The position numbers and the translations under genes were made by a program. The notes under the pieces were generated by a model, which was not told where the DNA came from, did no database searches, and worked only from the letters and a program-made list of their open reading frames with translations. This document shows positions 1 through 51,137 of a stretch of DNA of 64,000 nt, one piece after another; within the stretch, counting starts at the first letter, position 1, and each line of letters opens with the position of its first letter. The stretch lies in sequence record NC_031927.1; one strand, written 5' to 3'.

Positions 1-942
1 ATGTCATTCAAAGATCTAAAGAAGCAATCATCTCTCGGCGCTCTTACCCAGAAGCTCGTCAAGGAAGTAGAGAAGATGAATACAGCTGGCTCAAGCGGTG
101 ATGACCGCTACTGGAAGCTAGAATGTGATAAAGCCCAAAACGGTTATGCTGTGATCCGTTTCCTTCCACAGCCCGAAGGTGAAGATATGCCTTTCGTCAA
201 GATGTATTCCCACGCATTTCAAGGTAAAGGTGGCTGGTATATTGAGAACAGCTTGACTACACTAGGTCAGAAAGACCCCTTGTCTGAGTTCAACTCTGAG
301 CTTTGGAACAATGGTACTGATGCTGGTAAAGAGCAAGCACGTAAGCAAAAGCGTAAGCTCACATATATTGCTAACATTATGGTCGTCAAAGACCCAGCAA
401 ACCCCCAGAACGAAGGTGGAGTATTCCTCTACAAGTTCGGTAAGAAAATCTTCGACAAGCTTATGTCTGCTATGCAGCCTGAGTTTGAAGATGAAGAAGC
501 AATCAACCCATTCGACTTCTGGGAAGGCGCTAACTTCAAGCTCAAGGCAAAGAATGTAGCTGGCTACCGCAACTATGACTCTTCTGAGTTTGCGAAGGTA
601 GAAGCTCTTCTAGGTGGTGATGACGAAGCACTTGAAGGACTATACAATAAGTTGAACTCACTATCCGAGCTTGTTGCTCCAGATCAGTTCAAAGAGTATG
701 AAGTTCTTAAGAAGCGTCTCAATCAAGTCCTAGGCTTAGGTGCTCCTAGCAGCCGTCCAGCTGCCCAAGAGGATTCTGGTGATGAGGACATTGAAGAGCA
801 GCTACGGTCCGCTAGACCTGCCTTTAAGAAGGAAGTAGCAGCCTACTCTGAGCCAGAACTACCATCAACAGCAACGCCAGAGCCTGCCTCTAGTGAAGAT
901 GATGATGCCCTCAGCTGGTTCCAGTCACTTTCTGAAGATTGA
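1..942 (+). CDS. gp32: T4-like single-stranded DNA-binding protein
   Basis: MSFKDLKKQSSLG..L start, GYAVIRFLP, WYIENSLTTLGQKDP, FLYKFGKKIFDK, NPFDFWEGANFKLK, RNYDSSEF and acidic C-terminal tail are typical of gp32. Confidence 0.97.
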   Translation: MSFKDLKKQSSLGALTQKLVKEVEKMNTAGSSGDDRYWKLECDKAQNGYAVIRFLPQPEGEDMPFVKMYSHAFQGKGGWYIENSLTTLGQKDPLSEFNSELWNNGTDAGKEQARKQKRKLTYIANIMVVKDPANPQNEGGVFLYKFGKKIFDKLMSAMQPEFEDEEAINPFDFWEGANFKLKAKNVAGYRNYDSSEFAKVEALLGGDDEALEGLYNKLNSLSELVAPDQFKEYEVLKKRLNQVLGLGAPSSRPAAQEDSGDEDIEEQLRSARPAFKKEVAAYSEPELPSTATPEPASSEDDDALSWFQSLSED

Positions 943-1311
943 TTAACTCTGATACAACTGCATCAGTGGTAAAGTCAAAGCAGCCTGAACTTCATTAGGC
1001 TTTAACATATACAGAGGCGTAGTATTGTTCCCAGTACTATAGTTCCTCTGTTTTTTTATGTGTAAATTTATTCCAGTCCAGCCCCACTCATAGACCCCCA
1101 ATACCTGCACAATAGGATACATATCCGTCAAGAAGTCTGGTTTCTCTGCAATGTAAGTATAGACATAAACCTTACCAGGAATAGGCATAGGAGCGATACT
1201 ATCAGAAAGAACCGCTTCTAGTTCTTTCATAATATCTTCAGAGTTTTCAGTACCAATAAGTTTGTCTAACAGAGGTCTAACTCTGTTGTTGCTCTTTTTC
1301 TTTTTAGCCAT
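943..1311 (-). CDS. Short gp2-like DNA end protector homologue (cyanophage type)
   Basis: PGKVYVYTY, D.YP...V, W.GINLH pattern; lies next to gp4 as in T4-like phages. Confidence 0.55.
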   Translation of the reverse strand: MAKKKKSNNRVRPLLDKLIGTENSEDIMKELEAVLSDSIAPMPIPGKVYVYTYIAEKPDFLTDMYPIVQVLGVYEWGWTGINLHIKKQRNYSTGNNTTPLYMLKPNEVQAALTLPLMQLYQS

Positions 1312-1742
1312 TAGACCCCTAGCTCCTTTTCAGTCATAATTTTGAACTCCCACCCCTGATCCAGGCAAAACTCCTTAGCAGCTGCCCATTTAGCCTGATT
1401 CTGAGAGAACATAGCCTCTGCTAGGAGAGTATTTTTAGTTCTCCTCTTGTATTTGGGTGGTTGAGTCTCCTTATATGGCTTAACTTCAATTAATATCTTT
1501 TCCCTCTTATCATCCTTATTAATTGCTTCCATATAAAAGTCTGGGTAATACTTAGCCATCCTTTTTTTGACAGGATTGTAATATGGGATTACAATTTCTT
1601 CTGATGCCCACTTAATTATTTTACTGTTAGTATCACAATAACGCATAAGTTTGCGCTCCCATAACGACCTATAAACAATCATATTGGGATTACCAATATA
1701 TTTCTTGGGATTCTCTGGTTTATAGATTCCTTTATAGGACAT
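1311..1742 (-). CDS. gp4: Head completion nuclease
   Basis: YKGIYKPENPKKYIG, YRSLWERKLM, WASEEIVIPY, YYPDF, IEVKP, NQAKWAAA, FKIMTEKEL. Confidence 0.95.
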   Translation of the reverse strand: MSYKGIYKPENPKKYIGNPNMIVYRSLWERKLMRYCDTNSKIIKWASEEIVIPYYNPVKKRMAKYYPDFYMEAINKDDKREKILIEVKPYKETQPPKYKRRTKNTLLAEAMFSQNQAKWAAAKEFCLDQGWEFKIMTEKELGV

Positions 1743-1747
1743 AAATA
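1740..1747 (+). promoter_or_regulatory. T4-type late promoter (CATAAATA)
   Basis: Upstream of 1774; similar (C)TAAATA motifs at 2517, 4126, 8796, 12877, 20606 precede other structural genes. Confidence 0.7.
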
Positions 1748-1773
1748 GAGTAGGTAGTTCAATAGTATTTAGT

Positions 1774-2520
1774 GTGCCTAGAGTATTAACGCTAGAAGAT
1801 GTAAAACCACTACTTGGTAATTTGTCAAGGTCAAATTACTATCAGGTGCAGTTTGGTGGATTATCACCTGCATTGCTTGGAGCACTATCTGCAAGGGGCG
1901 TGGATCCATTTTTTGTATCTAATGATTCTGGGTTGCTTTGCTATCAAGCACAGCTTCCAGGATCTTCATTAGCTAGAACAGAATCTACAAACTTTACTGG
2001 TATTACAGAAAACTTTGCCCATAGGAAAGTATTTACTCCATTGAGCTTAGACTTTTATTGTGATGATAGATATAGATCTCTAAAGTTCTTAGAGCACTGG
2101 ATGGAATATGCCGTCAGTGGTAATGGGCTTAGTGGATATGCTGATAGTAACTACACATATAGGATGCAATATCCTAACGATCCTCTAACTGGGTATAAGT
2201 GTAGTGGTTCTAAAATATATAAATTTGAAGCTAATGTGAGTAGGATTATTGAATACTCTTTTATTGGATTATTCCCAATTAATCTATCATCAACTCAAGT
2301 TAGATATGGCGCAGATGGTGAACTCACCAGAGTCAGTTGTCAGTTTGGATATACGAGATATATTGCTGGATCTGTATTGTCTATAGATGAGGCTAGAGGT
2401 TTCTCAAATAATTTGCAGTCTGGTCTAACTAATATTACGGGCAACATTAATACCGTAATAGATACTGTAGATAGGCTCAGAGGAACAGCTGCAAACGTAT
2501 TGGACCTATTCACCAACTAA
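1774..2520 (+). CDS. Tail tube/baseplate tube initiator (gp19/gp54 fold)
   Basis: LCYQAQLPG, LSLDFY, FLEHWM, LFPINLS, F.Y pattern of gp19/gp54-like proteins; GTG start after a late promoter; precedes gp48. Confidence 0.75.
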   Translation: MPRVLTLEDVKPLLGNLSRSNYYQVQFGGLSPALLGALSARGVDPFFVSNDSGLLCYQAQLPGSSLARTESTNFTGITENFAHRKVFTPLSLDFYCDDRYRSLKFLEHWMEYAVSGNGLSGYADSNYTYRMQYPNDPLTGYKCSGSKIYKFEANVSRIIEYSFIGLFPINLSSTQVRYGADGELTRVSCQFGYTRYIAGSVLSIDEARGFSNNLQSGLTNITGNINTVIDTVDRLRGTAANVLDLFTN

Positions 2521-2528
2521 ATATCACT

Positions 2529-3467
2529 ATGGCTAAATCATCCCCCAAACCAAGCTTACAATACCCCACCAATATTGCTAATGGCAATAATGACTACTTT
2601 CATTTGCAAATTTTTGAATATAAACCACTGGGTCTTGGTGGGGGTGGTGATAATTTATTTGATGTTTCGTCAAGTCAAGCTCAAAGACCTAAAGTAGATA
2701 AAGAAACTAGTGGTGATAACCAGTCATACTTAGGGCAAATTATATTACCTATGCCAGACAACATTGGTGATAATAACTCAGTTTCTTGGGACACTGATAC
2801 ATTAAACTCATTGACCATTGCCGGTGCAGGTACGCTCAGTGATGCTATATCAAAATTAAATTTTAATAATCCTGATCCAGGAGGGGCTTTAGATACAGTA
2901 AAAGATGGTGCATCCAAATTTTTAGATGCACTAAAAGATATTGATGTAAGAGGTACTTTAAAAAATACGTTAATAACTAGTGCCATAACTGGGGGAAATG
3001 TTGATCCAAACTCAATAGTTAGTAGAACAACTGGACAAGTATTAAACCCAAACTTGGAGCTTCTATTTAAGGGAGTTATTTTGAGACAGTTTAACTATAG
3101 CTTTACACTAACACCAAGAACCAGTGAAGAGGGAACTCAGATTAAGGGTATCATAAATACTCTTAAGAAAAGAATGTCAGCAAAAAATACCACAGGTGCT
3201 GCTGCTGGTATATTCATTAAGGCACCTGATGTGTTCCAGCCAAGATTCATGCAAGGTCAAAAACTACATCCATTTTTATATAGTATAAGGCAGTGTGCTT
3301 TAGTGTCTATGAATGTTAATTATGATGGTGCAGGAATATATGCAACATATGGAGACGGCACACCAGTTAAAATGACTTTACAGATGTCATTTAGAGAATT
3401 GAGTCCATTATACTCTGAAGACTATAAAGATGGTTTACCTGGTCCAGATGAAGGAGTTGGATTCTAA
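2529..3467 (+). CDS. gp48: Baseplate tail tube cap
   Basis: LQYP start, IILPMP.NI.D.NSVSW, NPNLELLFKGV.LRQF.YSF.LTPR, CAL.SM.VNY, L.F.EL.P. Confidence 0.9.
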   Translation: MAKSSPKPSLQYPTNIANGNNDYFHLQIFEYKPLGLGGGGDNLFDVSSSQAQRPKVDKETSGDNQSYLGQIILPMPDNIGDNNSVSWDTDTLNSLTIAGAGTLSDAISKLNFNNPDPGGALDTVKDGASKFLDALKDIDVRGTLKNTLITSAITGGNVDPNSIVSRTTGQVLNPNLELLFKGVILRQFNYSFTLTPRTSEEGTQIKGIINTLKKRMSAKNTTGAAAGIFIKAPDVFQPRFMQGQKLHPFLYSIRQCALVSMNVNYDGAGIYATYGDGTPVKMTLQMSFRELSPLYSEDYKDGLPGPDEGVGF

Positions 3468-4117
3468 TGACTTATTTCAGACAGCTACCGAATATTGAAT
3501 ATCAAAACTTCCTAAATGATCGCACAGGATCACAGGATTACATTTTGATGAAGAATATTTTCCTTAGGGGAAAATTGAGAGAAGACCTAGAAAGTAATTT
3601 TACAGTATTTCAGAAGTATAGTATTAAAGGTGATGAAAGACCTGATGAGATTGCCTATGATATATACGGATCATCCCAATATGACTGGGTTGTTCTAATT
3701 ACTGCTAGGATCATTACTTATCAAAATGACTACCCATTAACGAGTCAAGAACTCTATGACTATACCTTAAATAAGTATGGTGTTGAGGGGATGAATGCTA
3801 TCAATCACTATGAGAGCGTTGAGGTTAGAGATAGATTGGATAGGTTGGTATATCCAGCAGGTATCGTTGTAGCTAAAGATTTTACTATACCCAATCCAGA
3901 TACCCCAACATCATTTATCAGCCCTGTAGTTGGGGTTAGTAACTTTGAATATGAGACAAATAAGAATGATAGAAAGCGTAATATAACTATTCTAAGACCT
4001 CTATACTTAAATCAATTCTTGAATGATATGAGAGAAATCTCTAAGTATGGATTTAACTCAGAATATGTTAATTCAACTACGATTAGAGCGGAGAATAGCA
4101 AGACTAAGAGCCCCTAA
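3467..4117 (+). CDS. gp53: Baseplate wedge subunit
   Basis: YFRQLPNIEY, Y.IKGDERPDEIAY..YG...YDWVVL LysM-like motif, KYG...INHYE. Confidence 0.92.
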   Translation: MTYFRQLPNIEYQNFLNDRTGSQDYILMKNIFLRGKLREDLESNFTVFQKYSIKGDERPDEIAYDIYGSSQYDWVVLITARIITYQNDYPLTSQELYDYTLNKYGVEGMNAINHYESVEVRDRLDRLVYPAGIVVAKDFTIPNPDTPTSFISPVVGVSNFEYETNKNDRKRNITILRPLYLNQFLNDMREISKYGFNSEYVNSTTIRAENSKTKSP

Positions 4118-4159
4118 TTAGCCGTCTAAATAACTATAGCATTCTACAAATTCTTTATT

Positions 4160-4870
4160 ATGGCGCTTCCTAAGATTGCCAAAGTGACTCACGAGACTAT
4201 TATTCCCTCAACTGGGAAGAAGATTAAGTTTCGTCCGTTTCTTGTGAAAGAGGAAAAGGTACTTATTTTAGCTCGCGAGTCTAACGACCAAAACGAGATG
4301 GTTAAGGGTATCATTGATGTAATCAATGCTTGCGTTATGACGAAAGGATTTTCTACTGAAAATCTATCCACTTTTGATATTGAATATATTTTCCTTAGTA
4401 TTAGGGGTAAATCTATTGGGGAAGATGTTGAAGTTGTTGTTACTTGCCCTGATGATGGAGTGACTAGAGTCAATCATACCATTTTCTTGGATGAGGTAAA
4501 AGTCATCTTTGATGATGAACACTCAATGCAAGTTAAGATTGATGATACTTATTCTGTTCTGATGAAGTATCCTAGTATTGAATCTGTTATGGCTGCTGAT
4601 TCTGAGAATGTGAGTGTTACTGATAGTCTAGAGCTTATTGCATCTTGCATAGATCAGATTTATTCTGAGGAGGACTCCTGGTCTTCTAGTGATAGTACTA
4701 CAGCAGAATTGGTCGAATGGGTTGAAGAACTCGAACCAAAGCAATTTGAGGGAATTGAGAAGTTCTTTACTACAATGCCCAAACTAAGTCATACCATTCA
4801 GGTTACTAACCCAGAAACTAAGGTGACTAGTGATGTTGTACTTGAGGGGCTAGGATCTTTTTTCGCGTAA
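4160..4870 (+). CDS. gp26: Baseplate hub subunit
   Basis: MALPKI, IKFRPFLVKEEKVL, FDIEYIFL.IRGKSIGE, CPDD, MKYPS, FF.TMPKL. Confidence 0.92.
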   Translation: MALPKIAKVTHETIIPSTGKKIKFRPFLVKEEKVLILARESNDQNEMVKGIIDVINACVMTKGFSTENLSTFDIEYIFLSIRGKSIGEDVEVVVTCPDDGVTRVNHTIFLDEVKVIFDDEHSMQVKIDDTYSVLMKYPSIESVMAADSENVSVTDSLELIASCIDQIYSEEDSWSSSDSTTAELVEWVEELEPKQFEGIEKFFTTMPKLSHTIQVTNPETKVTSDVVLEGLGSFFA

Positions 4871-4872
4871 GT

Positions 4873-5052
4873 ATGGCTCACGAAGACCTTGAGTCATACT
4901 ATAAAACAAACTTTGCTCTAATACAACATCATAAATACAGTTTAAGTGATATTGAAAATCTTATCCCTTGGGAAAGAGATATATACATTACACTACTTAA
5001 AAACTGGATTGAAGAAGAAGAGCAACGCATAGCACAACAACAGCAGCGCTAA
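4873..5052 (+). CDS. gp51: Baseplate hub assembly catalyst (59 aa, not in ORF track)
   Basis: Manual translation MAHEDLESYYKTNFALIQHHKYSLSDIENLIPWERDIYITLLKNWIEEEEQR matches gp51; follows gp26. Confidence 0.9.
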   Translation: MAHEDLESYYKTNFALIQHHKYSLSDIENLIPWERDIYITLLKNWIEEEEQRIAQQQQR

Positions 5053-6899
5053 TGAACTTATTTGGAGCCGCCACTACGGGAGTTGATCCACAAACTGGAA
5101 AATACCTCTCCAAAGAACAAAGAGTCGCAATGTTCCGCGCATCTAGGGGACAGGGTGGCGGAACAGCTGGTGGCGGAAACAATTCTGCTGGGTCTCAAGT
5201 AACTCCAAAGACTGCTATTGTTGTAGCTAATAAGTTTTCTGAAATTACACAGACACTTAGTAATAACTATCAGACTGCTAGTGCTGGTGTTGCAGAGCAG
5301 GTTGCCGAAAATAGGGCACGTATTGAAAATCTTTATCGTATTGTATATGATAGAAGAAAAGAAGATTTAAAAAGAGAGAAGCAAGAAACTAGAAATACTT
5401 TAATTGGAGCTGAGAGGAGTAAGAGAGGACTTAAGGAGGGATTTGTAGAAGGTATCTCTTCCGCAGCAGCTGCAGCAGTAGCACCATTACAGAAAGCAGC
5501 AGCGGCAGTACAGAAGCCCATTATGTCCCTATGGGATAAAATAAGGAATGCTCTACTGTTATTGACTGCAGCTTGGGTTATTGATAATCTACCTGCAATC
5601 CTGAAGAAGTTTGATGAATTTTTTGGTAGTATAAAGAGCTTAAAGAATACATTGACAAAAGCTCTGGTTAATATCAGAGGTGTATTTGGTATATTTGATG
5701 GTATTATTAGGGGTATAGTACGTGGAATTGGTGCAGTAATTAAAACTGCTTATAGAGTTGGTAAGACTATCTTCCAGTCAGCATTTCGTTTAGGAAGAGC
5801 AGTATTTAATGCTATTAAAAAGGTAGTTGAGACCGTAGTTAGGACTATTTTTAAGGGTATTCGTGCTTTAGTTGGTGGTATAGGCAATGCTTATCGTGCC
5901 GCTAGGGGATTATTACCAGGTGGAAATAAGCCAACAACCCCAAAACTACCAGATAAACAGCCTAAAAATGTCTTCCAAAGGTTGTGGGGTAAGGTTACTA
6001 AAGCTGCTACAGGACTAAAAGAATTTGCTGGAAATCAATACGGCAAACTGAAAGAGGGTGCTGATAAATTTATGACGGGATTTAGTAATCTACGCTCCAA
6101 GGCAATGGAGAAACTGAATCCCATACAAGCTCAAGCTACAAAAGATGGTATTGAAAAGGGTACCACTGCAAGTAGGGAAAAGGGTGTAAAGAGTCTTCTT
6201 ACACGTATCCTTGAGAAGGCAGGCATCAAGGGTGGTAAGGGGTTGATGAATAATCCTGTACTCAAAAAATTATTAAAACTACCTGGAATTGGTATTGCTA
6301 TTGATGTAATTCTCAATAAAGCAGGTGGGCAAGGGGTAGCAGAGTCCCTAATCAGAGGATTCTCTTCTGGTATTGCTGGTATGGTTGGTGCGAAGGCAGG
6401 TGCGGCTGTTGGTGCTGGTGTCGGTACAATAGCAATTCCTATTCCTGGAATCGGTACGGCTGTTGGTGGTATTTTGGGTGGTATTATAGGATCTATATTA
6501 GCAGCAAACACGGCTGATTCTCTCGCTAAAGCAGGTATGGAGAGTGTTGGGATGGAAACCACATCTGATGCCCAGATGAGGGAGAATTATGAGCCAGTTG
6601 TAGAGTCTGTAATTGGTAGTAATAAGTCCAGTACCGCAGGACAGCCTAGTCCTGCTGCAGCCATCACTCCAAGCACTCCAAGCACACCAGATGGTATGCA
6701 AGTTCCCGAAGGCTCTAATACTACAAATAATGTTACTGTTGAGCAAATGCCCCCTATTATGGAAAATATAGAGAGAGAAAAGAAGGAAGTTATACCTGAA
6801 CAACCAGTTCCTACAATCTCTACTAGAGACCCTCAGACAGATCTTTATAGAGCTATGGCTAGTAAGAGCTATCAGCTTAATTTGGCGGGTACATTCTAA
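5052..6899 (+). CDS. Tape-measure/baseplate hub (gp29-like) protein
   Basis: Long amphipathic, basic helical segments and a glycine-zipper hydrophobic stretch (GAKAGAAVGAGVG...GGILGGIIG); position after gp51. Confidence 0.6.
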   Translation: MNLFGAATTGVDPQTGKYLSKEQRVAMFRASRGQGGGTAGGGNNSAGSQVTPKTAIVVANKFSEITQTLSNNYQTASAGVAEQVAENRARIENLYRIVYDRRKEDLKREKQETRNTLIGAERSKRGLKEGFVEGISSAAAAAVAPLQKAAAAVQKPIMSLWDKIRNALLLLTAAWVIDNLPAILKKFDEFFGSIKSLKNTLTKALVNIRGVFGIFDGIIRGIVRGIGAVIKTAYRVGKTIFQSAFRLGRAVFNAIKKVVETVVRTIFKGIRALVGGIGNAYRAARGLLPGGNKPTTPKLPDKQPKNVFQRLWGKVTKAATGLKEFAGNQYGKLKEGADKFMTGFSNLRSKAMEKLNPIQAQATKDGIEKGTTASREKGVKSLLTRILEKAGIKGGKGLMNNPVLKKLLKLPGIGIAIDVILNKAGGQGVAESLIRGFSSGIAGMVGAKAGAAVGAGVGTIAIPIPGIGTAVGGILGGIIGSILAANTADSLAKAGMESVGMETTSDAQMRENYEPVVESVIGSNKSSTAGQPSPAAAITPSTPSTPDGMQVPEGSNTTNNVTVEQMPPIMENIEREKKEVIPEQPVPTISTRDPQTDLYRAMASKSYQLNLAGTF

Positions 6900-39405: not shown

Positions 39406-40144
39406 AATACTATGTATATTCTCCCTCTCATTTTCATTGCCTGCCTGACTACTGGTGAGTGCTTCAGCTCTAACAGAGCACCCGAAGTACGTGAACCAGT
39501 ACCATACGGCACAGACCTAGAAGCTCCCCGTAGAGGGATGCGTGACCCCCGAGTGAGGACAACTAATGATTGATTATTACAGCGAAGACCACATAGACTC
39601 GTTTGACTTTGAAAAAGCCGAACAACTTGAACAAGACATTTTAGAGATGATTTCTAACCCCAACAAAGAGTATTATCACCACAGCTCTCCCGCTTGGAAT
39701 ATTGCTGCACTTCTTGTATACTTGGAGGATATGGTGGACAAACTAGAGGAACTAAACTGATGAATCAAGCAAAGCAACTAGCAGAGAACCTTGCCTTTGA
39801 TGCCTATATGAGGTATCACCGCAACAGAATGACTCTCCCCTGCCCTGATGTGGACCAGCTCCGCACCTATGATGTGGTTGACCGTGGTGAGAGCTATGTT
39901 ATACTGTATAAGAACGGTATGGATGCTGGTAAGTCCTGTATCTATGCTACAATAAATAAGGAGACCTGTAAGGTATGCTCGAACTATCTCTGATTCTAGG
40001 GCTCGCTCTGACGCCCCTAGAAGCCTCTGAGAAGGTCAATGAGTTCTGTTCATATGTCGTTGGTATCCCCTACGCTAGCGACAACTTCACAGACGAAGAG
40101 TGGGGGAGATTTGTATATTGTAGAGAGTCCATAAGAGTACCACA

Positions 40145-40582
40145 ATGAAAAAAGTAATAGCAACATTAGCAACAGCAGCACTAGCAACAACAGTAGCACT
40201 ACCAGCAAAGGCTGGATATGGCTGGGATGTTACACACAATACTAGGTTTGAGTTTGTACCAGTCAGAGACAGAGAAACAAAGGTAGTAAACCATGTCATT
40301 TCAACTGGTGTTAATTTTGTGTGGACGCGATATGATGGAGAAAAGTTTGCATATCCTATCACAATAGAACATAAGGGAAATACCTGTGCTAGACCACCAA
40401 CACCCCGAGGTAGTAGTCATCTAACTGTATGTGTTGATAAGAGTTACTATGTTATAAGTCCTAAATGGGAAAGGAGAGGTTACTATACCAATGTTGAGTT
40501 ACAGTGCAATCGCCCCATCAAAATTAATGATAAGTTCCTTAACTTACAGGGAGCTTGTGATCACCTCAGTACCACTAGGTGA
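40145..40582 (+). CDS. Putative exported protein
   Basis: MKKVIATLATAALATTVALPAKA signal peptide, four Cys. Confidence 0.7.
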   Translation: MKKVIATLATAALATTVALPAKAGYGWDVTHNTRFEFVPVRDRETKVVNHVISTGVNFVWTRYDGEKFAYPITIEHKGNTCARPPTPRGSSHLTVCVDKSYYVISPKWERRGYYTNVELQCNRPIKINDKFLNLQGACDHLSTTR

Positions 40583-40626
40583 AGTGTCCACTGCCCCATC
40601 ACAGGGGCTTTTTTATGCTCTATAAT
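40571..40626 (+). promoter_or_regulatory. Dispersed copy of dyad-hairpin-TATAAT element (nuclease-helicase/MTase locus)
   Basis: CCACTAGGTGAAGTGTCCAC, GCCCC..GGGGC hairpin, TATAAT; related copies at about 44222, 44608, 45781, 47625, 50022 (partial), 51137. Confidence 0.8.
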
Positions 40627-40648
40627 AATCACATACACACAGAGAACC

Positions 40649-42784
40649 ATGCACACTAAGAACTTCTATATGCAGATCATTCCAGGTGTGGATAATGCCT
40701 TTGGATTTGGTGATACTGAAGATACGTATGAGCAGCGTCAGAAGGGCTCTGACTACTCTAAGGTGGGTGGCTATGGTTTTGCCCTAGGTCAAAAGAAGTG
40801 GACTACACATGGTTGGTGGGAAGACCAGACAGTCATTGATAGGGCTCACCACCAGGATAAAGAAGTTCATAAATTTATTATGACTTTCCCTACTATGAGG
40901 AAGAAGGACGAGGTATTTACTTTTGAAAAGTCCTCAGGTCTTACTCTTGATATTATTAAGCATAAGATTGACGAGCAGTTCTTTTCTGGTGAGACAACAA
41001 ATCGTGTTGAACTTACTCCACGTAAGCACCAGAGTGAGTTCTTAGCTAAGGTTCAAGCAGAGTATCTTGAGTTCTTACTGTTCGCTAAGTGTAGAGCTGG
41101 TAAGTCTATTATGTCACTACTACACGTAAAAGAGCGAGGATATAAAGTAACTCTTATTGTTGCACGTATGACCTCCCCTAAGGGATCCTGGGAGAGTGAT
41201 AGTCGTGGGTTTACTAACTTCGACAATATGATATTCATTGACCTACAAGGTAATAAGAACTATGCTAAGGAGATTGAGTACTGGACTAATACTAATAAGC
41301 AGGTAGTTCTATTCGACACTGTTCAAGGTGCTATATCTAAGGACTTCAACATTGACTTCCTTATTTACGATGAGGCTCATATTGGAGCTAAGGATACTGC
41401 TAAGCAGTGGAAGTCCCTTAGGTCTATGATTGACTGCCCTATTCTATATGTAACAGGTACTGCCTATAAGATGGCAGATGACTTTAGTGAAGATAATAAG
41501 TTTGTATACTCATACTTTGAGGAGCAGTTAGATAAGAAGAATGGGCTCATTGAGCGCCCTAGTATGAATGTTATCCTAGCTAAGTATGAGACTGAAGAGT
41601 ATCAGGCTATCTATGGAGATGACCCAGATGCTATGAAGAACCTATTCCAGATGGATGGTTCTAAGTTCGCTCAACCAGCACTAGTGAGTGAGTTCATTAA
41701 GATGTACTTTATGAATGACCGTAGTATCCGTAAGTTTAGTGATCGCCTTCTTAATGATAGTAATCACATTTATATGACTCTACCTAGTGTGGCTGCTTGT
41801 TACGCATTCAGTGAGTTGCTAGCATCTACTAGGTTCGCTCCTCTAGTTGTTACTGGAGATAGTAAGAAGTCTAATAAGGATATCAGTAAGCATATTCAAG
41901 AGAACCCCACTGGCTCTATTGTTATCACTCGTACAGCTAACGTTTTAGGTGTTACTGCTGACGTTGATACTGTTATGAATTGTGCTGAAGGTAGCTCTAT
42001 TGAGTTCTGGACACAGTTCGCATTCCGTGGTGGTAGTGGTGACAATGACTGGAGAGTTATTGACTTCGCACCTCAACGTTGTCTTGAGTCTCTCCGTGAG
42101 ATGTATGTCTTAGCGTGTGAGAATGCACCTACTATCAGTGAGTTTGAACTACTTGACTATGTGAACGTTACTGAATGGGATAGGGGCTTCGAGACACTAA
42201 CACAGGAGCAGGTTGAGAACATTCTTGGCTCAGATCCAGCTGGTAGTGTACGTCTAATCTCAGGATTAACAACTGCATTGAATGTAGAACTACTAGCTGG
42301 TATGGGGTTCAATGCTAACCTCACTCCTGTTGATAGTAACATTGCTAAGCAGGTAGTTGTTAATGATAACGAAGCTAACGGTAAAGGTGCTCTTAGTCGC
42401 ACATCTACACCAGAAGAGAAGGAGAAGGCAGAGAGCCTACGTCGTGAGGTTATGCACGTTCAGGCTATTCTTGAGCGTATCCCTCTCTCTATCCTCCATA
42501 GTCATATGTTATCTACTACCATCACTGGTATTGATAGCCTCATCACAAGTGAAGCCTATCTGAATGATACTAGTGATTATGATGGTGTTCTAGCTAAGTA
42601 TATGGAGAAGGATCAGTCGTTCTATCAGCGTCTCAACCGCCGTGTGGCTGCTGTATCTCTCGATATTAAAGCACAGATGAACCGTGATCTAGTACAGACA
42701 CTTGATAAACTGTCCATCTCTGCTACCGCACAGATGCCTATCCCTGCTACACTACTAACTGAAATGCACACCAGTTATGCCTAA
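40649..42784 (+). CDS. SF2 helicase with N-terminal T5orf172/GIY-YIG-like domain (restriction subunit-like)
   Basis: N-terminal FYMQ...FGFGDT...YEQR...DKEVH...DEVF; PRKHQ, KCRAGKS (motif I), DEAH, VTGT (motif III), QFAFRGG (motif VI). Confidence 0.82.
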   Translation: MHTKNFYMQIIPGVDNAFGFGDTEDTYEQRQKGSDYSKVGGYGFALGQKKWTTHGWWEDQTVIDRAHHQDKEVHKFIMTFPTMRKKDEVFTFEKSSGLTLDIIKHKIDEQFFSGETTNRVELTPRKHQSEFLAKVQAEYLEFLLFAKCRAGKSIMSLLHVKERGYKVTLIVARMTSPKGSWESDSRGFTNFDNMIFIDLQGNKNYAKEIEYWTNTNKQVVLFDTVQGAISKDFNIDFLIYDEAHIGAKDTAKQWKSLRSMIDCPILYVTGTAYKMADDFSEDNKFVYSYFEEQLDKKNGLIERPSMNVILAKYETEEYQAIYGDDPDAMKNLFQMDGSKFAQPALVSEFIKMYFMNDRSIRKFSDRLLNDSNHIYMTLPSVAACYAFSELLASTRFAPLVVTGDSKKSNKDISKHIQENPTGSIVITRTANVLGVTADVDTVMNCAEGSSIEFWTQFAFRGGSGDNDWRVIDFAPQRCLESLREMYVLACENAPTISEFELLDYVNVTEWDRGFETLTQEQVENILGSDPAGSVRLISGLTTALNVELLAGMGFNANLTPVDSNIAKQVVVNDNEANGKGALSRTSTPEEKEKAESLRREVMHVQAILERIPLSILHSHMLSTTITGIDSLITSEAYLNDTSDYDGVLAKYMEKDQSFYQRLNRRVAAVSLDIKAQMNRDLVQTLDKLSISATAQMPIPATLLTEMHTSYA

Positions 42785-43823
42785 GCTTCTTATTGTAGGC
42801 GATCCTACGGGCTCCACCTCTCTTGATGCTATCAACAACAGGGGCTGGAGTCCAGAAGATATAACAGTGTGGGAGAACGATCCCCGTCACGTGTATGCTA
42901 TTAAGTGTATTAATGGTATAATAGATATTATATTAGATGACGATAAACTAACTAAACTGAAGGAATGTACTATGAAGTTTGACGTTATTATTGGTAACCC
43001 ACCTTATCAGAATAATACTAAGAATGGTGCTGGTACTGGATCAGGTAGTTCAGCTCTATACTTAGACTTTGTTAGTTTAGCTAAGAGTATTTTGAAGCCT
43101 GGTGGTACCATCTCACTAATTACTCCCACAAGTATTGTAAGTGGTAGTAGTGACAAGACTAAGTATCTTGTAGGTAAAGATGCATTGTATAGTGTGTCTT
43201 CTATTGACTTTACCGCTAACGAGCAGTTCAGCATCGGTGAGCGAGTATGTCGATGGACTGCTACTAATAGTGATGAGAGTATAGTAACTAAACTATCTGA
43301 TGGACGTGAGGTTGACCTTAGAGAGGTTCCTTTTGTTGTTGAGGACTATGAAGTTAGTAATATTGTTCAGTCTCTTCTAGAGGCACCTGGACCACGCATA
43401 GAGTTTTCTAACCGTGGTGGCTTTGCATCTAAGGGTAGCTCTATTAAGACAGATACTCAGACACCACAGACACCATACCTAGTTGACTTCAATGGTAAGG
43501 ATAAGTATGTGTCTGAAAAGTGCAATAACTACCATCAGCCTAAGATCTTTGCCCCTCAGCAGACTAATCCTAAGAACTTTGAGTTCTACTGTGCAGAGGA
43601 TAAAGGTGCTAGTCAGTCAACATACACCTGTCCATTCAATACCATTGAAGAGGCACAAGTAGCCGTTGATATTCTAAACAACCCATACTATCTCTGGATT
43701 GTAAATAAAGTACGTATTGCAAGTCGCTTACGTAAGACACATCTTGACAGATTTCCCATTGTTGATATAGAATCAATCCTAAGCAAAGAGCAAAAGTCCT
43801 ACATTGACAGTAACCCACTATGA
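42777..43823 (+). CDS. Eco57I-like adenine methyltransferase, catalytic (NPPY) + TRD part
   Basis: KFDVIIGNPPY, LYLDFV, LKPGG.ISLITP; motif I region degenerate (IVGDPTGS). Confidence 0.85.
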   Translation: MPKLLIVGDPTGSTSLDAINNRGWSPEDITVWENDPRHVYAIKCINGIIDIILDDDKLTKLKECTMKFDVIIGNPPYQNNTKNGAGTGSGSSALYLDFVSLAKSILKPGGTISLITPTSIVSGSSDKTKYLVGKDALYSVSSIDFTANEQFSIGERVCRWTATNSDESIVTKLSDGREVDLREVPFVVEDYEVSNIVQSLLEAPGPRIEFSNRGGFASKGSSIKTDTQTPQTPYLVDFNGKDKYVSEKCNNYHQPKIFAPQQTNPKNFEFYCAEDKGASQSTYTCPFNTIEEAQVAVDILNNPYYLWIVNKVRIASRLRKTHLDRFPIVDIESILSKEQKSYIDSNPL

Positions 43824-44221
43824 GTAAGAACAAGCATAATGAAAATGTAGGATCGGATATTGTACGTTCTAATGATCGTATTAATGAGACGGGTGAGGTA
43901 TTCACTCCTATGGAACTATGTCGTGAAATGGTCAACGAACTACCACTAGATGTTCTGCAGAATCCTAAGAGCACCTTTTTAGATAATTCTGCTGGTCACG
44001 GTAACTTTATCATCGCTCTCCGCGATAAGCTATTGGAATATCACGAGTTATCACATATCTTAGACAATATGCTCTATGCTGTTGAGTTTATGGAGGATAA
44101 TCACGCCGAGTTGTGTGAGAGAATAGGTGTGCCTGTTACTCACCCACATTATGTTAGAGCTGATGCTACCACATATGATTATAGCTTTGGTGAGCCTATA
44201 GGATTAGAGGCATTCTTCTAG
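43820..44221 (+). CDS. Short methyltransferase SAM-binding subunit (motifs X-I-II, no NPPY)
   Basis: GEVFTP, FLDNSAGHGNF, MLYAVE; no catalytic motif IV in 133 aa. Confidence 0.85.
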   Translation: MSKNKHNENVGSDIVRSNDRINETGEVFTPMELCREMVNELPLDVLQNPKSTFLDNSAGHGNFIIALRDKLLEYHELSHILDNMLYAVEFMEDNHAELCERIGVPVTHPHYVRADATTYDYSFGEPIGLEAFF

Positions 44222-44296
44222 CCACTTTGAGTAGTGTCCACTGCCCCAACACAGGGGCATTTTTAATGTTATGATTTATCCATCAGCTTAACGCAT

Positions 44297-44614
44297 ATGA
44301 TCGAAGCTATCGCAGCTCCAAACACACAGGTCACTGAAGAGGGTGGACTCTTCTACATCTCTATGAGCGTTGGTGCTGATGAGGTATGCACTGCTTGTTA
44401 TATGCGCGACAAGGCGCAGAGAGTGGTCATTATCCAATTAGATACACCAGTGGAGTATAGAGGCAATGGCTACGCCACAGCCCTCCTGGAGGGCATACAG
44501 AGGCGTGAGAAGACTGGTCCTATCCGTGTGATTAGTACTAGCCATGCCGTTGGTTTCTACAATAAGCTAGGATACATTGAAGTATCACCATACGTGTTCC
44601 AAAGCTCAAACTGA
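44297..44614 (+). CDS. GNAT-family acetyltransferase
   Basis: EYRGNGYATALL motif A and AVGFYNKLGY motif B. Confidence 0.88.
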   Translation: MIEAIAAPNTQVTEEGGLFYISMSVGADEVCTACYMRDKAQRVVIIQLDTPVEYRGNGYATALLEGIQRREKTGPIRVISTSHAVGFYNKLGYIEVSPYVFQSSN

Positions 44615-44675: not shown

Positions 44676-45569
44676 ATGACCAAGAACCTACACCTTGAGC
44701 ACCCAGAAGACCTTATCTTGTCTGGTGACCTATCAGTGCTTGACTGGTTCTCTACTATCTCCACCACCAGTGTGAAGATGGACGGCAGTGTAGCCATTGT
44801 ATGGGGCATCAACCCAGAGAATGGTAAGTTTTTCGTAGGTAAGAAGTCAGTATTCAATAAGAAGAAGGTTGAGATATGCTATACACCACAAGATATTAGG
44901 AAGTTCTACGGTGACCGTGAGGAACTAGCAGACATTCTCCTCACTTGCCTTGACTTCTTGCCCCGCACTGGTGGTATCTATCAAGGTGACTTCATTGGGC
45001 TGGGTGGTAACTCAAAATACACACCTAACACCATCACATATGACTTTGGCGCTCCTGTTGAGGAAGTCATTATCATTGCTCCTCACACATACTATGTTGG
45101 TGATACTATCAAGGGATGTGTTGCTCACCCACTATCACACCAATTAGAATCAACTGGTGATGTTCTGTTTGTTCAGCCTACCGTTGATTGTAAGTGTACC
45201 TTCTATGATTCTGTTGATGCTATCCGCACATCAGTGAAGAAGTCCAAGTTCTTGACTGATAAATCAGCAAAAGAGGTTCGTGTTATACTTAACGCATTCG
45301 TTCGCGAAGGTAAGTCCATCAGCCCACAACTACTAGAGCAAGTTGTAGGTGACTGGAATCTCACTATGTCCTACTTCCAAATCATTGACCTAAAGGAGCA
45401 GATGATGGAAGCTATGATAGTATATGATGGACCAAAGGCATTCATTGGTGATATGCCCGTAGCTTGCGAAGGCTATGTTCGCACCAATCGCCACGGTTCT
45501 ATGAAACTGGTTGATCGCTACCAGTTCGCACAAGCTAACTTCAACAACACCCGATTCAGGTCAAACTAA
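44676..45569 (+). CDS. Nucleotidyltransferase/RNA-ligase-like protein
   Basis: KMDGS (KxDG), YQGDF, CEGYV and MKLV match ligase motifs I, III, IV, V in order. Confidence 0.55.
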   Translation: MTKNLHLEHPEDLILSGDLSVLDWFSTISTTSVKMDGSVAIVWGINPENGKFFVGKKSVFNKKKVEICYTPQDIRKFYGDREELADILLTCLDFLPRTGGIYQGDFIGLGGNSKYTPNTITYDFGAPVEEVIIIAPHTYYVGDTIKGCVAHPLSHQLESTGDVLFVQPTVDCKCTFYDSVDAIRTSVKKSKFLTDKSAKEVRVILNAFVREGKSISPQLLEQVVGDWNLTMSYFQIIDLKEQMMEAMIVYDGPKAFIGDMPVACEGYVRTNRHGSMKLVDRYQFAQANFNNTRFRSN

Positions 45570-46844: not shown

Positions 46845-47633
46845 ATGGAAACCAATTCAGAAACTATGAACAAGCTACTCAATGGTGAATGTCTTGAAGT
46901 TATGAAGACACTAGCTGATAATTCAATTGATATGGTTTTCTGTGACCTACCTTATGGTACTACACAGAACTCTTGGGATACTATCATCCCATTCGATGAG
47001 TTGTGGGCAGAGTATCATCGTATCGTCAAGATTGATGGTGCTATTGTACTAACAGCACAACCACCATTTGATAAGGTCTTAGCTTGTTCAAATCTAAAAG
47101 ACTTCCGTTATGAATGGATATGGGAGAAGAATAAAGCAACTGGGCACCTAAATGCTAAGAAGATGCCTATGAAGGCACACGAGAACATACTAGTATTTTA
47201 TAGAAAGCTTCCTACATATAACCCACAGATGACCACAGGTCATAAGCCAATGAATGCAGTATTGCCTAAGAGCAATATGCCTGCACCAAAGGAGAAGAGA
47301 AACTATAACCACGTAGAAGAGCGACTAGGTAATCCTGGTGGTGGAACTAGTAGGTATCCAAGAGATACTGTTAGGTTCCCCGTTATCAACAATGATGACC
47401 CAAAGAAGTTCCACCCAACACAGAAACCTATCCCCTTGATTGAGTACTTCATCAAGACATATTCTAATCCAGGTGATGTTGTACTAGACAATTGTATGGG
47501 CTCAGGTTCTACCTGTATTGCTGCATCTAATCTAGATCGACAGTTTGTTGGTATTGAGATGAGTGAGGAATATTACAACCTAGCAGTTGAGTGGGTCGAA
47601 TCCGAACGTAGACTCACCCAGTTCTTTAACTGA
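46845..47633 (+). CDS. Beta-class N6-adenine/N4-cytosine DNA methyltransferase
   Basis: GECLEVM, DLPYG (motif IV), KAHENILVF, HPTQKP, VLDNCMGSGST (motif I after IV). Confidence 0.95.
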   Translation: METNSETMNKLLNGECLEVMKTLADNSIDMVFCDLPYGTTQNSWDTIIPFDELWAEYHRIVKIDGAIVLTAQPPFDKVLACSNLKDFRYEWIWEKNKATGHLNAKKMPMKAHENILVFYRKLPTYNPQMTTGHKPMNAVLPKSNMPAPKEKRNYNHVEERLGNPGGGTSRYPRDTVRFPVINNDDPKKFHPTQKPIPLIEYFIKTYSNPGDVVLDNCMGSGSTCIAASNLDRQFVGIEMSEEYYNLAVEWVESERRLTQFFN

Positions 47634-50034: not shown

Positions 50035-50739
50035 GTGTCCACTGCCCTCAGTGGTATTCTTCCTATTCTCTTGAGACAAGAATTTCCAGATGCTGAAATT
50101 TGCTGCCTTGAGTATAATAATATGTTTGTAAAACATCTAGAAACTCTTGGCTTTATCACTTATACATCTAAAGACACACTTCCTATGAATTTTGACTTAA
50201 CTATAGGCAACCCACCATATGGGAATAGAGCTTCATTAGCAATTAAGTTTGTTAATAAGGGGTTAGAGTTATCTGGTCGTGTTGATATGGTACTACCCCT
50301 ATCATTTAATAAACCATCAATACAAAACTCAATTGACCCATATTCTGAATGTATATTCAGCGAAGAACTACCTGCCGATACATTCCCCAATGGAATTAGG
50401 GCAGTCCGCCAAATATGGGTAAAGTCAAAGACTAAGAGGGAGCTAGTTCCCCTACCAACTACACACTCAGACTTTGAGTTTATTAAATGGGAAGATAGAG
50501 ACACTGCCGACCTAATGATTGGGGCAGTAGGCTCTGGTCCTTCTGGTAGAGTCTACACAGAGAACTTCAGTCATTATCAATGCAAGCATAGTTTCATTAA
50601 ATGTAAGTCTCAGGAGATTATTGATAGGTTGGTTGAGATGGGACCTGAACTGAGAGAAACTTCTAAAGCTCAAAATGGTAGAGGTGGTGTATGTAAGTCT
50701 GATATTGTTACACTGTACATTAGTAAGTATGATTCATGA
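50035..50739 (+). CDS. Second Eco57I-like methyltransferase catalytic (NPPY) + TRD part
   Basis: NFDLTIGNPPYG, LAIKFVNKG, VLPLSF; no intact FxGxG; start uncertain (GTG lies inside a repeat dyad). Confidence 0.82.
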   Translation: MSTALSGILPILLRQEFPDAEICCLEYNNMFVKHLETLGFITYTSKDTLPMNFDLTIGNPPYGNRASLAIKFVNKGLELSGRVDMVLPLSFNKPSIQNSIDPYSECIFSEELPADTFPNGIRAVRQIWVKSKTKRELVPLPTTHSDFEFIKWEDRDTADLMIGAVGSGPSGRVYTENFSHYQCKHSFIKCKSQEIIDRLVEMGPELRETSKAQNGRGGVCKSDIVTLYISKYDS

Positions 50740-51137
50740 GTAAGAACAGGCACAACCTGGATGTTGGTTCATCCATTGATAGAAGCGATGAGCGTATTGC
50801 AGAGACACAAGAGGTATTCACTCCCATTTCTCTATGTGCATCTATGGTCAATGATATTGATGAAGATACACTCAAGAATCCATCCAGTAAGTTTCTAGAC
50901 AACTCTGCTGGTTCTGGCAACTTCTTGGTTGCCCTCCGCGATGAGCTATTGGAATATCACGAGTTATCACATATCTTAGATAATATGCTATATGCGGTTG
51001 AGCTTATGGAAGACAATCACGCCGAGTTATGTGAGAGGTTAGGTGTTCCTGTCACCCATCCACACTATGTCTGCCACAATGCACTCACATATGATTATAG
51101 CTTCGGTGAGCTTGTAGGATTAGAGGCATTCTTCTAG
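50736..51137 (+). CDS. Second short methyltransferase SAM-binding subunit, paralogue of 43820-44221
   Basis: EVFTP, FLDNSAGSGNF; the C-terminal half is nearly identical to 43820-44221 in both protein and DNA. Confidence 0.88.
   Translation: MSKNRHNLDVGSSIDRSDERIAETQEVFTPISLCASMVNDIDEDTLKNPSSKFLDNSAGSGNFLVALRDELLEYHELSHILDNMLYAVELMEDNHAELCERLGVPVTHPHYVCHNALTYDYSFGELVGLEAFF

Follow-up and report, generated by a model that had tools for sequence, protein, structure and literature searches.

Catalytic and cofactor-binding parts of a candidate N6-adenine DNA methyltransferase lie on separate chains in the helicase-methylase cluster of Synechococcus phage S-CAM7

The genes gp055, gp056 and gp057 of Synechococcus phage S-CAM7 form a cluster in which the functions of a DNA methyltransferase appear to be divided between chains. 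The stretch analysed here, called the window, covers the opening 64 kb of isolate 0910CC49 of this T4-like cyanomyovirus (Kyanoviridae) and agrees with it, coordinate for coordinate, at 100% identity. On balance, we read the cluster as a multi-chain relative of Type ISP and Type I restriction-modification (R-M) systems built on a composite N6-adenine DNA methyltransferase, and consider it probable that gp056, which carries the catalytic NPPY motif, is physically complemented by gp057, which would provide the S-adenosylmethionine (SAM) pocket in trans. What is already known is the gene-level annotation of RefSeq, helicase or 'restriction subunit' plus methyltransferase: gp055 is named 'type II restriction-modification system restriction subunit' (phrog_22930 in PHROG), gp056 'DNA methyltransferase' (phrog_3689) and gp057 'hypothetical protein' (phrog_4376). 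An earlier note, made from the letters of this DNA, had described three overlapping genes for proteins of 711, 348 and 133 aa with distinctive motifs, and genes and motifs are all as it described them. The three open reading frames (ORFs) lie on the plus strand, gp055 overlapping gp056 by 8 nt and gp056 overlapping gp057 by 4 nt:

40649..42784, + strand: gp055, 711 aa; T5orf172-like domain, superfamily 2 (SF2) DEAH ATPase, helical C-terminal region and degenerate motif-X tail
42777..43823, + strand: gp056, 348 aa; predicted TaqI/CamA-like gamma-class N6-adenine methyltransferase fold with C-terminal target-recognition domain (TRD)
43820..44221, + strand: gp057, 133 aa; small SAM-binding subunit, as judged by its motifs

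The cofactor motifs are found in the small protein. Motif X of gp057 (GEVFTP, aa 25-30, 43892-43909) and motif I (FLDNSAGHGNF, aa 53-63, 43976-44008) are followed by motif II (AVEFMEDN, 44075-44101) and a motif III-like YD, and YDYSFGEP (44174-44197) is a degenerate motif IV; NPPY itself is absent from gp057, which ends before any such motif. The small family is abundant and uniform: it comprises 2226 clusters at 90% identity, nearly all of 132-136 aa, is under purifying selection (ratio of nonsynonymous to synonymous substitution rates, dN/dS, 0.09-0.15), and keeps T-x-E-x-F-T-P, A-G-x-G-N, E89 and Y119-D120 invariant from cyanophages to T4-like phages of Klebsiella and Aeromonas. Its members are annotated as hypothetical nearly everywhere, and a scan of representative cellular genomes from 185,579 species found the small protein on only one contig, from a metagenome-assembled genome.

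The catalytic motif is found in gp056, whose AlphaFold2 (AF2) model (mean predicted local distance difference test score, pLDDT, 88) shows the two domains of a gamma-class DNA adenine methylase, with a TRD like that of TaqI. Searched with Foldseek, the model matches CamA (E 6e-14) and M.TaqI (E 2.4e-13, 389 columns over 383 residues, template-modelling (TM) score ~0.6); it also superposes on the whole of M.BseCI (E ~1e-13), with BREX PglX next. Pfam Eco57I is matched at E 1.1e-14 around the motif FDVIIGNPPYQ (motif IV, aa 68-78), which is preceded by LLIVGDPTGSTS at aa 4-15, and the motif I loop has shrunk to GDPTGS. Since the top structural matches, at E ~1e-13, are DNA methyltransferases with TRDs, DNA is the likely substrate of the module. 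A reading as an RNA or protein methyltransferase, suggested by weak matches to Trm14 and HemK, was ruled out, the whole-model matches being DNA methylases with TRDs. The protein divides as follows:

42777..42956, + strand: degenerate SAM-binding half, gp056 aa 1-60, predicted beta1'-alphaA'-beta2'-alphaB'-beta3'
42978..43010, + strand: motif IV, FDVIIGNPPYQ; the recombination breakpoint of a metagenomic relative, L097, falls directly after it (43010/43011)
43011..43819, + strand: catalytic remainder and TRD, gp056 aa 79-348; exchangeable specificity module

This division of motifs holds throughout the relatives. A synteny survey covered 80 IMG/VR loci and two metagenomic contigs, 72 of which have at least 1.5 kb upstream of the small gene; in all 72 an NPPY-family gene lies directly 5' of the small gene on the same strand, and a helicase is also present in 60. 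Canonical motif I is found in every small protein (82/82) and in no adjacent NPPY partner (0/72); motif X and the glycine-rich motif I loop are both missing from gp056 and from 72/72 syntenic partners, and 48 of 58 gp056 relatives are without motifs I and X. The two families also fall on successive parts of single-chain enzymes: on CamA the small family maps to residues 25-80 and the gp056 family to 88-277; on TIGR02987 the small protein maps to 2-59 and gp056 to 100-124; and on the PADLOC Type IIG/ISP profile PDLC03626 (1359 positions) the helicase takes 168-297, the small protein 864-934 and gp056 1003-1083. The three proteins are thus collinear with a single-chain Type IIG/ISP profile while their gene order is permuted relative to it, which bears out the earlier proposal of a split, permuted single-chain layout.

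Neighbourhoods of the small gene fall into several architectures: a helicase of about 480 aa, an NPPY protein of 420 aa, a 200-aa protein and the small protein; a T5orf172-helicase (700), NPPY (340) and small, which is the type of the window; a helicase (750), NPPY and small; a fused helicase-NPPY protein (1040-1180) and small; NPPY (410-520) and small with no helicase; and a 'naked' NPPY protein, one that starts at motif IV, and small. Naked partners of the P-SSM2 type have NPPY at residue 3-13 and no N-terminal half, and the naked partners P0004 and P0010 are up to 52% identical to gp056. On the metagenomic contig L099 (5589 bp; 18-4831) five naked NPPY/TRD genes, each starting M-x-FDVIIGNPPY and spaced by 35-77 nt, surround one small gene, an array that looks like a multi-specificity methylase locus. 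Aeromonas phage Aeh1, for its part, fuses both components in a single protein, ORF084c, in the permuted order NPPY..TRD..X-I-II-III: residues 1-249 match an NPPY/TRD partner (E 8.5e-20) and residues 281-408 the small proteins (E ~1e-11).

Two side observations concern these loci. Two genes upstream of the permuted Aeh1 methylase, ORF087c (L011:1029-2228) encodes a TET-associated glycosyltransferase (TAGT, Pfam 3.6e-44), which hints at DNA hypermodification genes nearby. On another contig (L100:733-2681) a naked NPPY protein stands beside a gene with a precomputed Pfam match to the AcrVA2-like anti-CRISPR family; no small gene lies inside the 6 kb fetched.

The small protein and the N-terminal half of its longer partners seem to share an origin. 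Compared profile with profile, the small and gp056 families at first gave a negative result (probability 0.4%), and a positive one came only with the N-termini of the ~420-aa partners, where hhalign gave 104 collinear columns at E 3e-4. In that alignment motif X pairs with a degenerate counterpart, X', the Asp of motif I and the Glu of motif II are kept, the partner has lost the AGxGNF loop, and the YDYSFGEP of the small protein's C-terminus stands opposite FDVIIGNPP. A hidden Markov model of the small family likewise matches the N-halves of the partners at three distant loci, L101, L102 and L103; in the L103 pair, motif X persists in the partner and motif I in the small-like protein. The collinear alignment and the complementary losses make gp057 and the partner N-halves look like duplicates that have degenerated in a complementary manner, the gp057 side keeping the cofactor site and the partner side the catalytic motif. 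Distant relatives, naked partners and the Aeh1 fusion look, in the same way, like successive stages of a route to circular permutation by duplication, degeneration, loss and re-fusion.

A further line of evidence is that partners are exchanged while the small protein stays. The three sequenced S-CAM7 isolates (0910CC49, 0910SB42 and 0809CC03) are 98-99.7% identical on both flanks of the cluster and carry three unrelated cassettes, each a helicase plus an NPPY protein, in the interval that opens at the promoter repeat upstream of gp055 and closes at the initiation codon of the small gene; the small proteins themselves share 93-95% identity. L097 matches the window at 90.5% identity from the promoter as far as gp056 codon 78, the end of NPPYQ, after which similarity is absent until the first codon of the small gene, so that here the catalytic remainder and TRD alone have been exchanged. 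Breakpoints of the swaps are accordingly the promoter repeat, the position just after NPPYQ, and the start codon of the small gene. (The gp055 homolog of L097, at 3872-6008, is broken into ORFs of 337 and 377 aa, which may reflect a frameshift, an assembly error or a pseudogene.) On a tree of the 82 small proteins the partner types are clustered, yet with many switches, and one strongly supported clade mixes a partner starting at NPPY with partners that keep the N-terminal extension. That one conserved small protein goes with such different partners points to contact through the conserved catalytic core, at the canonical beta1/beta4 position, rather than through variable parts.

S-CAM7 itself has a second pair, the two genes being joined by an ATGA overlap and both called hypothetical in RefSeq:

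50035..50739, + strand: gp076, second, short NPPY protein; RefSeq start at 50122, FDLTIGNPPYG at 50191-50223
50736..51137, + strand: gp077, second small SAM-binding subunit, 133 aa; 75% identical to gp057, motifs intact

gp076 is a partner of the P-SSM2 type, with little or no N-terminal half; its equivalent in isolate 0809CC03 has 317 aa and matches Eco57I from residue 9.

The third chain, gp055, combines an N-terminal domain, a motor and a tail:

40649..40993, + strand: T5orf172-like (URI/GIY-YIG superfamily) N-domain, gp055 aa 1-115, by predicted fold and homology
41084..42037, + strand: SF2 ATPase core; Walker A 41084-41107, DEAH 41369-41380, motif III 41453-41467, motif VI 42014-42037
42731..42766, + strand: C-terminal tail QMPIPATLLTEM, aa 695-706; degenerate motif X (X')

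That the 711-aa protein is an SF2 DEAH helicase, as first proposed, is borne out by Walker A (AKCRAGKS, aa 146-153), DEAH (aa 241-244), TGTAY (aa 269-273) and QFAFRGGS (aa 456-463), motifs near-invariant across the family; Pfam ResIII is weak in gp055 and reaches E 1.2e-12 in family members. The tail had been called motif X-like, and it is indeed a degenerate motif X: the family consensus is QQxIPxELLDxML, the same type of segment forms the N-terminus of the ~420-aa NPPY partners (GRQPIPDELAxxM), and in the fused protein of MA01 it bridges helicase and methylase.

The N-domain takes more arguing. Its AF2 model (pLDDT 86.6), compared by Foldseek with BFVD, a library of predicted viral structures, finds among the top 50, its own family aside, more than 12 proteins annotated as T5orf172 and one GIY-YIG nuclease, these matches spanning ~110 of 118 columns (TM 0.5-0.59, probability ~1, E 1.6e-3 to 2e-2). 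In the helicase of L103, which is homologous to gp055 (E 4e-10) and adjoins a related methylase of the Eco57I family, Pfam recognises T5orf172 significantly (E 8.4e-8, above cutoff) at aa 22-112, in the place that the N-domain takes in gp055 and ahead of ResIII, and hhalign aligns the gp055 N-domain profile with this domain over 100 columns at E 1.4e-4, including the D..(I/V)H..L and E.F signature; the N-termini of the ~750-aa helicases resemble the gp055 N-domain weakly (E 0.039). The T5orf172-like identity first suggested for this region is thus upheld as regards fold and homology. Near-invariant residues are F18, G21, T23 (F18 to T23 belonging to the motif FGFGDT, aa 18-23), R30, K32, D35, K38, W56, W57, H74, P81, E88 and F90, of which R30, H74 and E88 can be equated with catalytic residues by pattern only. 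HMMER recovered 15 matches to the N-domain from 1.84 billion representative proteins, all of the same family or small stand-alone proteins.

Whether this domain cuts DNA is a separate matter: nuclease or restriction activity of the module is possible, and we put it forward tentatively. Several observations tell against it. Pfam T5orf172, MUG113 and GIY-YIG give no match at E<=1 in the gp055 N-domain or in 42 family members; NCBIfam and PADLOC find neither a nuclease nor T5orf172 there; the profile of the 711-aa family finds nothing at E<=0.01 among PDB sequences; and in Foldseek against PDB the best match has E 0.3 and TM 0.23, no solved GIY-YIG nuclease resembling the model. Several architectures, moreover, are without any helicase or nuclease-like domain.

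The module might instead modify only, as a translocating protective methylase directed, like DarB, against host restriction, with the T5orf172-like domain binding DNA, a somewhat doubtful reading that nonetheless deserves weight. T5orf172 was originally described as a DNA-binding domain, and the absence of matches to solved or Pfam nucleases fits this account, as do the helicase-free minimal conserved unit of NPPY plus small protein, the other orphan methylases carried by the phage and the large phage methylase-helicase proteins present in PHROGs. It has to contend, however, with the conservation of R30, H74 and E88 where, by pattern, URI-type catalytic residues are expected, with best defence-library matches to Type IIG restriction endonuclease-methyltransferases, with a strain-level hypervariability that suits conflict systems, and with what fills the equivalent slot elsewhere: a LEM-3-like GIY-YIG domain (Pfam E 1.9e-15) at the N-terminus of the NPPY partner of Klebsiella phage KpV477 (L010:2493-3638), and an Mrr-like motif, seen by eye, in the ~200-aa family.

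These two slots merit a word of their own. The KpV477 domain could be a true fusion or an inserted module of the homing-endonuclease type. The ~200-aa proteins (phrog_7683; L002:4662-5273, L006:5985-6587, L008:4936-5499) show, by eye, an Mrr-type PD-(D/E/Q)xK-like pattern, GDxFEWF...DxGxDG...QxKxK; Pfam, PADLOC, NCBIfam and PDB profile searches gave this pattern no support, and the proteins have no similarity to the gp055 N-domain.

The trans supply of SAM faces objections of its own, which lend themselves to a different account: gp056 would be self-sufficient, with a divergent SAM loop, and gp057 would be a second (allosteric) SAM site or sensor, a regulator, or a decoy poisoning the gamma-class methylase or R-M complexes of the host. 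The chief objection is the confident model of gp056 alone, a complete TaqI-like fold in which aa 4-53 are predicted, at pLDDT 85-93, to form beta-alpha-beta-alpha-beta (beta1'-beta3'), and for this reason the canonical slot of gp057 looks occupied in the gp056 monomer. E33, at the position of motif II, is invariant and relatives of gp056 still have the Asp of motif I, so gp056 could have residual cofactor binding. The alignment on which paralogy is argued has a probability of 40% and is of moderate significance only. The partners of L101 and L102, finally, have an apparently intact glycine-rich motif I and still a small-like gene next to them, from which it follows that the small protein may do more than replace a lost site. 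All this weighs against complementation. Self-sufficiency of gp056 nevertheless seems unlikely to us: it leaves unexplained the naked partners, which cannot bind SAM, as well as the Aeh1 fusion; near-identical small proteins serve partners with and without the N-terminal extension; and the glycine loop is deleted in 72/72 partners. The earlier claim that the SAM half comes in trans thus holds in so far as the small proteins have all the SAM motifs and the partners none, and is qualified by the degenerate copy that gp056 keeps; given that half and the complete predicted fold, trans supply can be called no more than probable for the cassette type of the window.

A third possibility is that the 711- and 348-aa ORFs are one gene of ~1060 codons broken by sequencing error or a recent frameshift, and this is very improbable. 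Natural fusions do exist, as the suggestion of an ancestral fusion implied (1074 aa in MA01, where the small gene is still separate, 979 aa in P0266 and 1039-1177 aa in IMG/VR loci), and the gp055 tail and gp056 start are two halves of one ancestral domain. However, the 489 relatives of the 711-aa protein, mostly of 690-712 aa, share a common tail end; about 20 gp056 relatives begin at the same residue; and the junction is kept with overlaps in different frames, the helicase stop and the next start meeting as TAATG, ATGA or TGATG among relatives and overlapping by 8 nt in the window. Constant length and varied overlaps show the split to be old and maintained rather than a sequencing artefact, and the indel or recent frameshift once suspected at 42777-42784 finds no place among about 480 relatives that end at the same point with several kinds of overlap. 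Programmed frameshifting there was likewise ruled out: no slippery context is seen, and the junction differs among relatives. gp055 and gp056 are probably coupled in translation, with fission and fusion apparently recurrent across lineages. Hardly credible, lastly, is the notion that gp057 is a decaying fragment that survives only to provide homology for swapping cassettes: every observed swap does have its 3' breakpoint exactly there and the end of gp057 resembles a degenerate motif IV, but a dN/dS of ~0.1, 2226 clusters of constant length, SAM-binding residues invariant out to Klebsiella and Aeromonas phages and the in-frame fusion in Aeh1 speak for a functional protein.

Under the composite-enzyme reading, gp056 would give the whole catalytic half, NPPY strand included, and the TaqI-like TRD, and gp057, a putative paralog of the N-terminal half, the SAM pocket with motifs X, I, II and III. 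The half still attached to gp056, its glycine loop lost, would be a vestigial or adaptor element. gp055 would be the motor, its X'-like tail most likely docking on gp056 at that vestigial half. The small subunit would be constant and interchangeable, and the catalytic/TRD subunit, often with the helicase, would be replaced by recombination, giving phage strains different specificities. Early in infection the complex would methylate phage DNA at a strain-specific site, and it may in addition translocate along unmethylated DNA of the host or of co-infecting phages and cut it.

A broader picture, quite possible if short of probable, is that T4-like phages practise a plug-and-play methylation in which one 133-aa SAM subunit activates many exchangeable catalytic/TRD subunits, and in which the stages of circular permutation are preserved. 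An array would offer up to five catalytic/TRD subunits and S-CAM7 two loci, and the subunits would often come with a T5orf172-helicase motor; exchange among co-circulating strains would mark a phage's own DNA, and unmarked host or rival-phage DNA might be attacked. The stages would survive as living genes: both halves intact (L101, L102), the cis copy degenerate (S-CAM7 gp056), the cis copy lost (P-SSM2, L099), and the parts re-fused in permuted order (Aeh1).

If the small protein is a shared cofactor subunit, an abundant gene with more than 2000 clusters in marine metagenomes acquires a function, and phages would change DNA-methylation specificity by swapping the catalytic/TRD gene only. The duplication route to circularly permuted methyltransferases has long been discussed, and these loci would supply natural intermediates for it. 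To our knowledge, lytic cyanophages are without the base hypermodification of the T4 style; the composite enzyme, if real, suggests that they tell self from non-self DNA by strain-specific methylation, with a bearing on host DNA degradation and on competition among co-infecting phages. A naturally split adenine methyltransferase would also be a scaffold for tools.

The cluster is bounded by a repeat element of ~40 nt, consisting of a GC hairpin, a T-run and a TATAAT-like box, of which the window has two copies (40586-40608 and 44236-44258; 0 expected by chance):

40583..40626, + strand: upstream repeat copy; hairpin GCCCC-ATCACA-GGGGC 40593-40608, T-run, TATAAT 40621-40626
44231..44275, + strand: downstream repeat copy; hairpin 44242-44259

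The upstream TATAAT box is 22 nt 5' of the gp055 ATG, and from its sequence this copy reads as ending the preceding gene and serving as promoter of the cluster. As to the earlier note's repeat promoter, a repeat with a TATAAT-like box does lie 5' of the cluster, but there is a second copy at the 3' end and the element combines terminator and promoter, so that its presence at both ends is read as bounding one transcription unit. RefSeq starts gp055 at 40670, 21 nt downstream of the ORF's ATG at 40649; the RefSeq start is probably too far downstream, because MHTKNFY is kept in the 48%-identical MA01 homolog.

On the 5' side of the cluster a 145-aa ORF (40145-40582) has a signal-peptide-like N-terminus, MKKVIATLATAALATTVALPAKA; RefSeq has no annotation for it and places a minus-strand ORF (40087-40299) where it begins. 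Similarity to the sister isolates ends at 40170, inside this ORF, and the sisters encode a 214-aa protein there, which makes it a secreted-type protein with a variable C-terminal part adjoining the cassette. On the 3' side follow a small GNAT-like acetyltransferase (44297-44614) and a DUF6267 protein (44676-45569); DUF6267 genes recur beside such modules in unrelated metagenomic contigs (L013, L014, L097). The window has a third DNA methyltransferase gene, gp064 (46845-47633), a beta-class N6_N4_Mtase (Pfam 1e-29) whose motif I (DNCMGSG) is C-terminal to its catalytic motif.

In the searchable literature we found no description of a separate small SAM-binding subunit or its strict pairing with NPPY partners lacking motif I, nor of naked-partner arrays around one small gene or strain-level cassette exchange. 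Type ISP enzymes (LlaGI, LlaBIII) share the functional order of nuclease-type domain, SF2 ATPase, gamma-class N6-adenine methylase and TRD, and the S-CAM7 module has SF2 motifs I, II (DEAH), III and VI upstream of the methylase as they do. They differ in being one polypeptide rather than three and in having an Mrr-like PD-(D/E)xK N-terminus where gp055 is T5orf172-like; the S-CAM7 module has its SAM motifs on a separate small protein and is encoded by a lytic phage. Type I R-M systems (HsdR+HsdM+HsdS) also have a separate motor with an N-terminal nuclease-type domain and SF2 ATPase, a gamma-class methylase, and specificity modules exchanged by recombination; in S-CAM7, however, specificity would reside in a TaqI-like TRD on the catalytic chain rather than in HsdS, the nuclease-type domain is different, and the cofactor half is a chain of its own. 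Type III R-M systems (Mod+Res) do not match: Mod is beta-class whereas gp056 is TaqI/CamA-like, and the nuclease of Res is a C-terminal PD-(D/E)xK whereas the extra domain of gp055 is N-terminal and T5orf172-like. DarB of phage P1 is a single giant virion protein, a methylase-helicase; by description it is likewise a phage-encoded N6-adenine methylase with an SF2 helicase, possibly protective, but as one chain in the virion where S-CAM7 has separate chains.

Among methyltransferases proper, M.TaqI, CamA and M.BseCI share the NPPY motif IV, gp056 superposing on the whole enzymes and the small protein aligning to their motif X/I region, but in S-CAM7 it is gp057 alone that has an intact motif X and an intact glycine-rich loop of motif I, both lacking from gp056. 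M.AquI and M.EcoHK31I are two-subunit C5-cytosine DNA methyltransferases, and thus also assemble a methyltransferase from two polypeptides of adjacent or overlapping genes; their split lies elsewhere in the fold, whereas that of the presumed N6-adenine enzyme of S-CAM7 separates the SAM half from the catalytic half, and an S-CAM7-type small subunit is apparently common to many partners. Circularly permuted amino-methyltransferases such as Aeh1 ORF084c place the catalytic half before the SAM half in one chain, and a circularly permuted M.EcoKI-like adenine methylase has been mentioned in jumbo phages (PMC7824862). In S-CAM7 this order holds only at the level of genes, with two chains and a gp056 that keeps a degenerate N-half, an arrangement seemingly intermediate between gamma and permuted orders.

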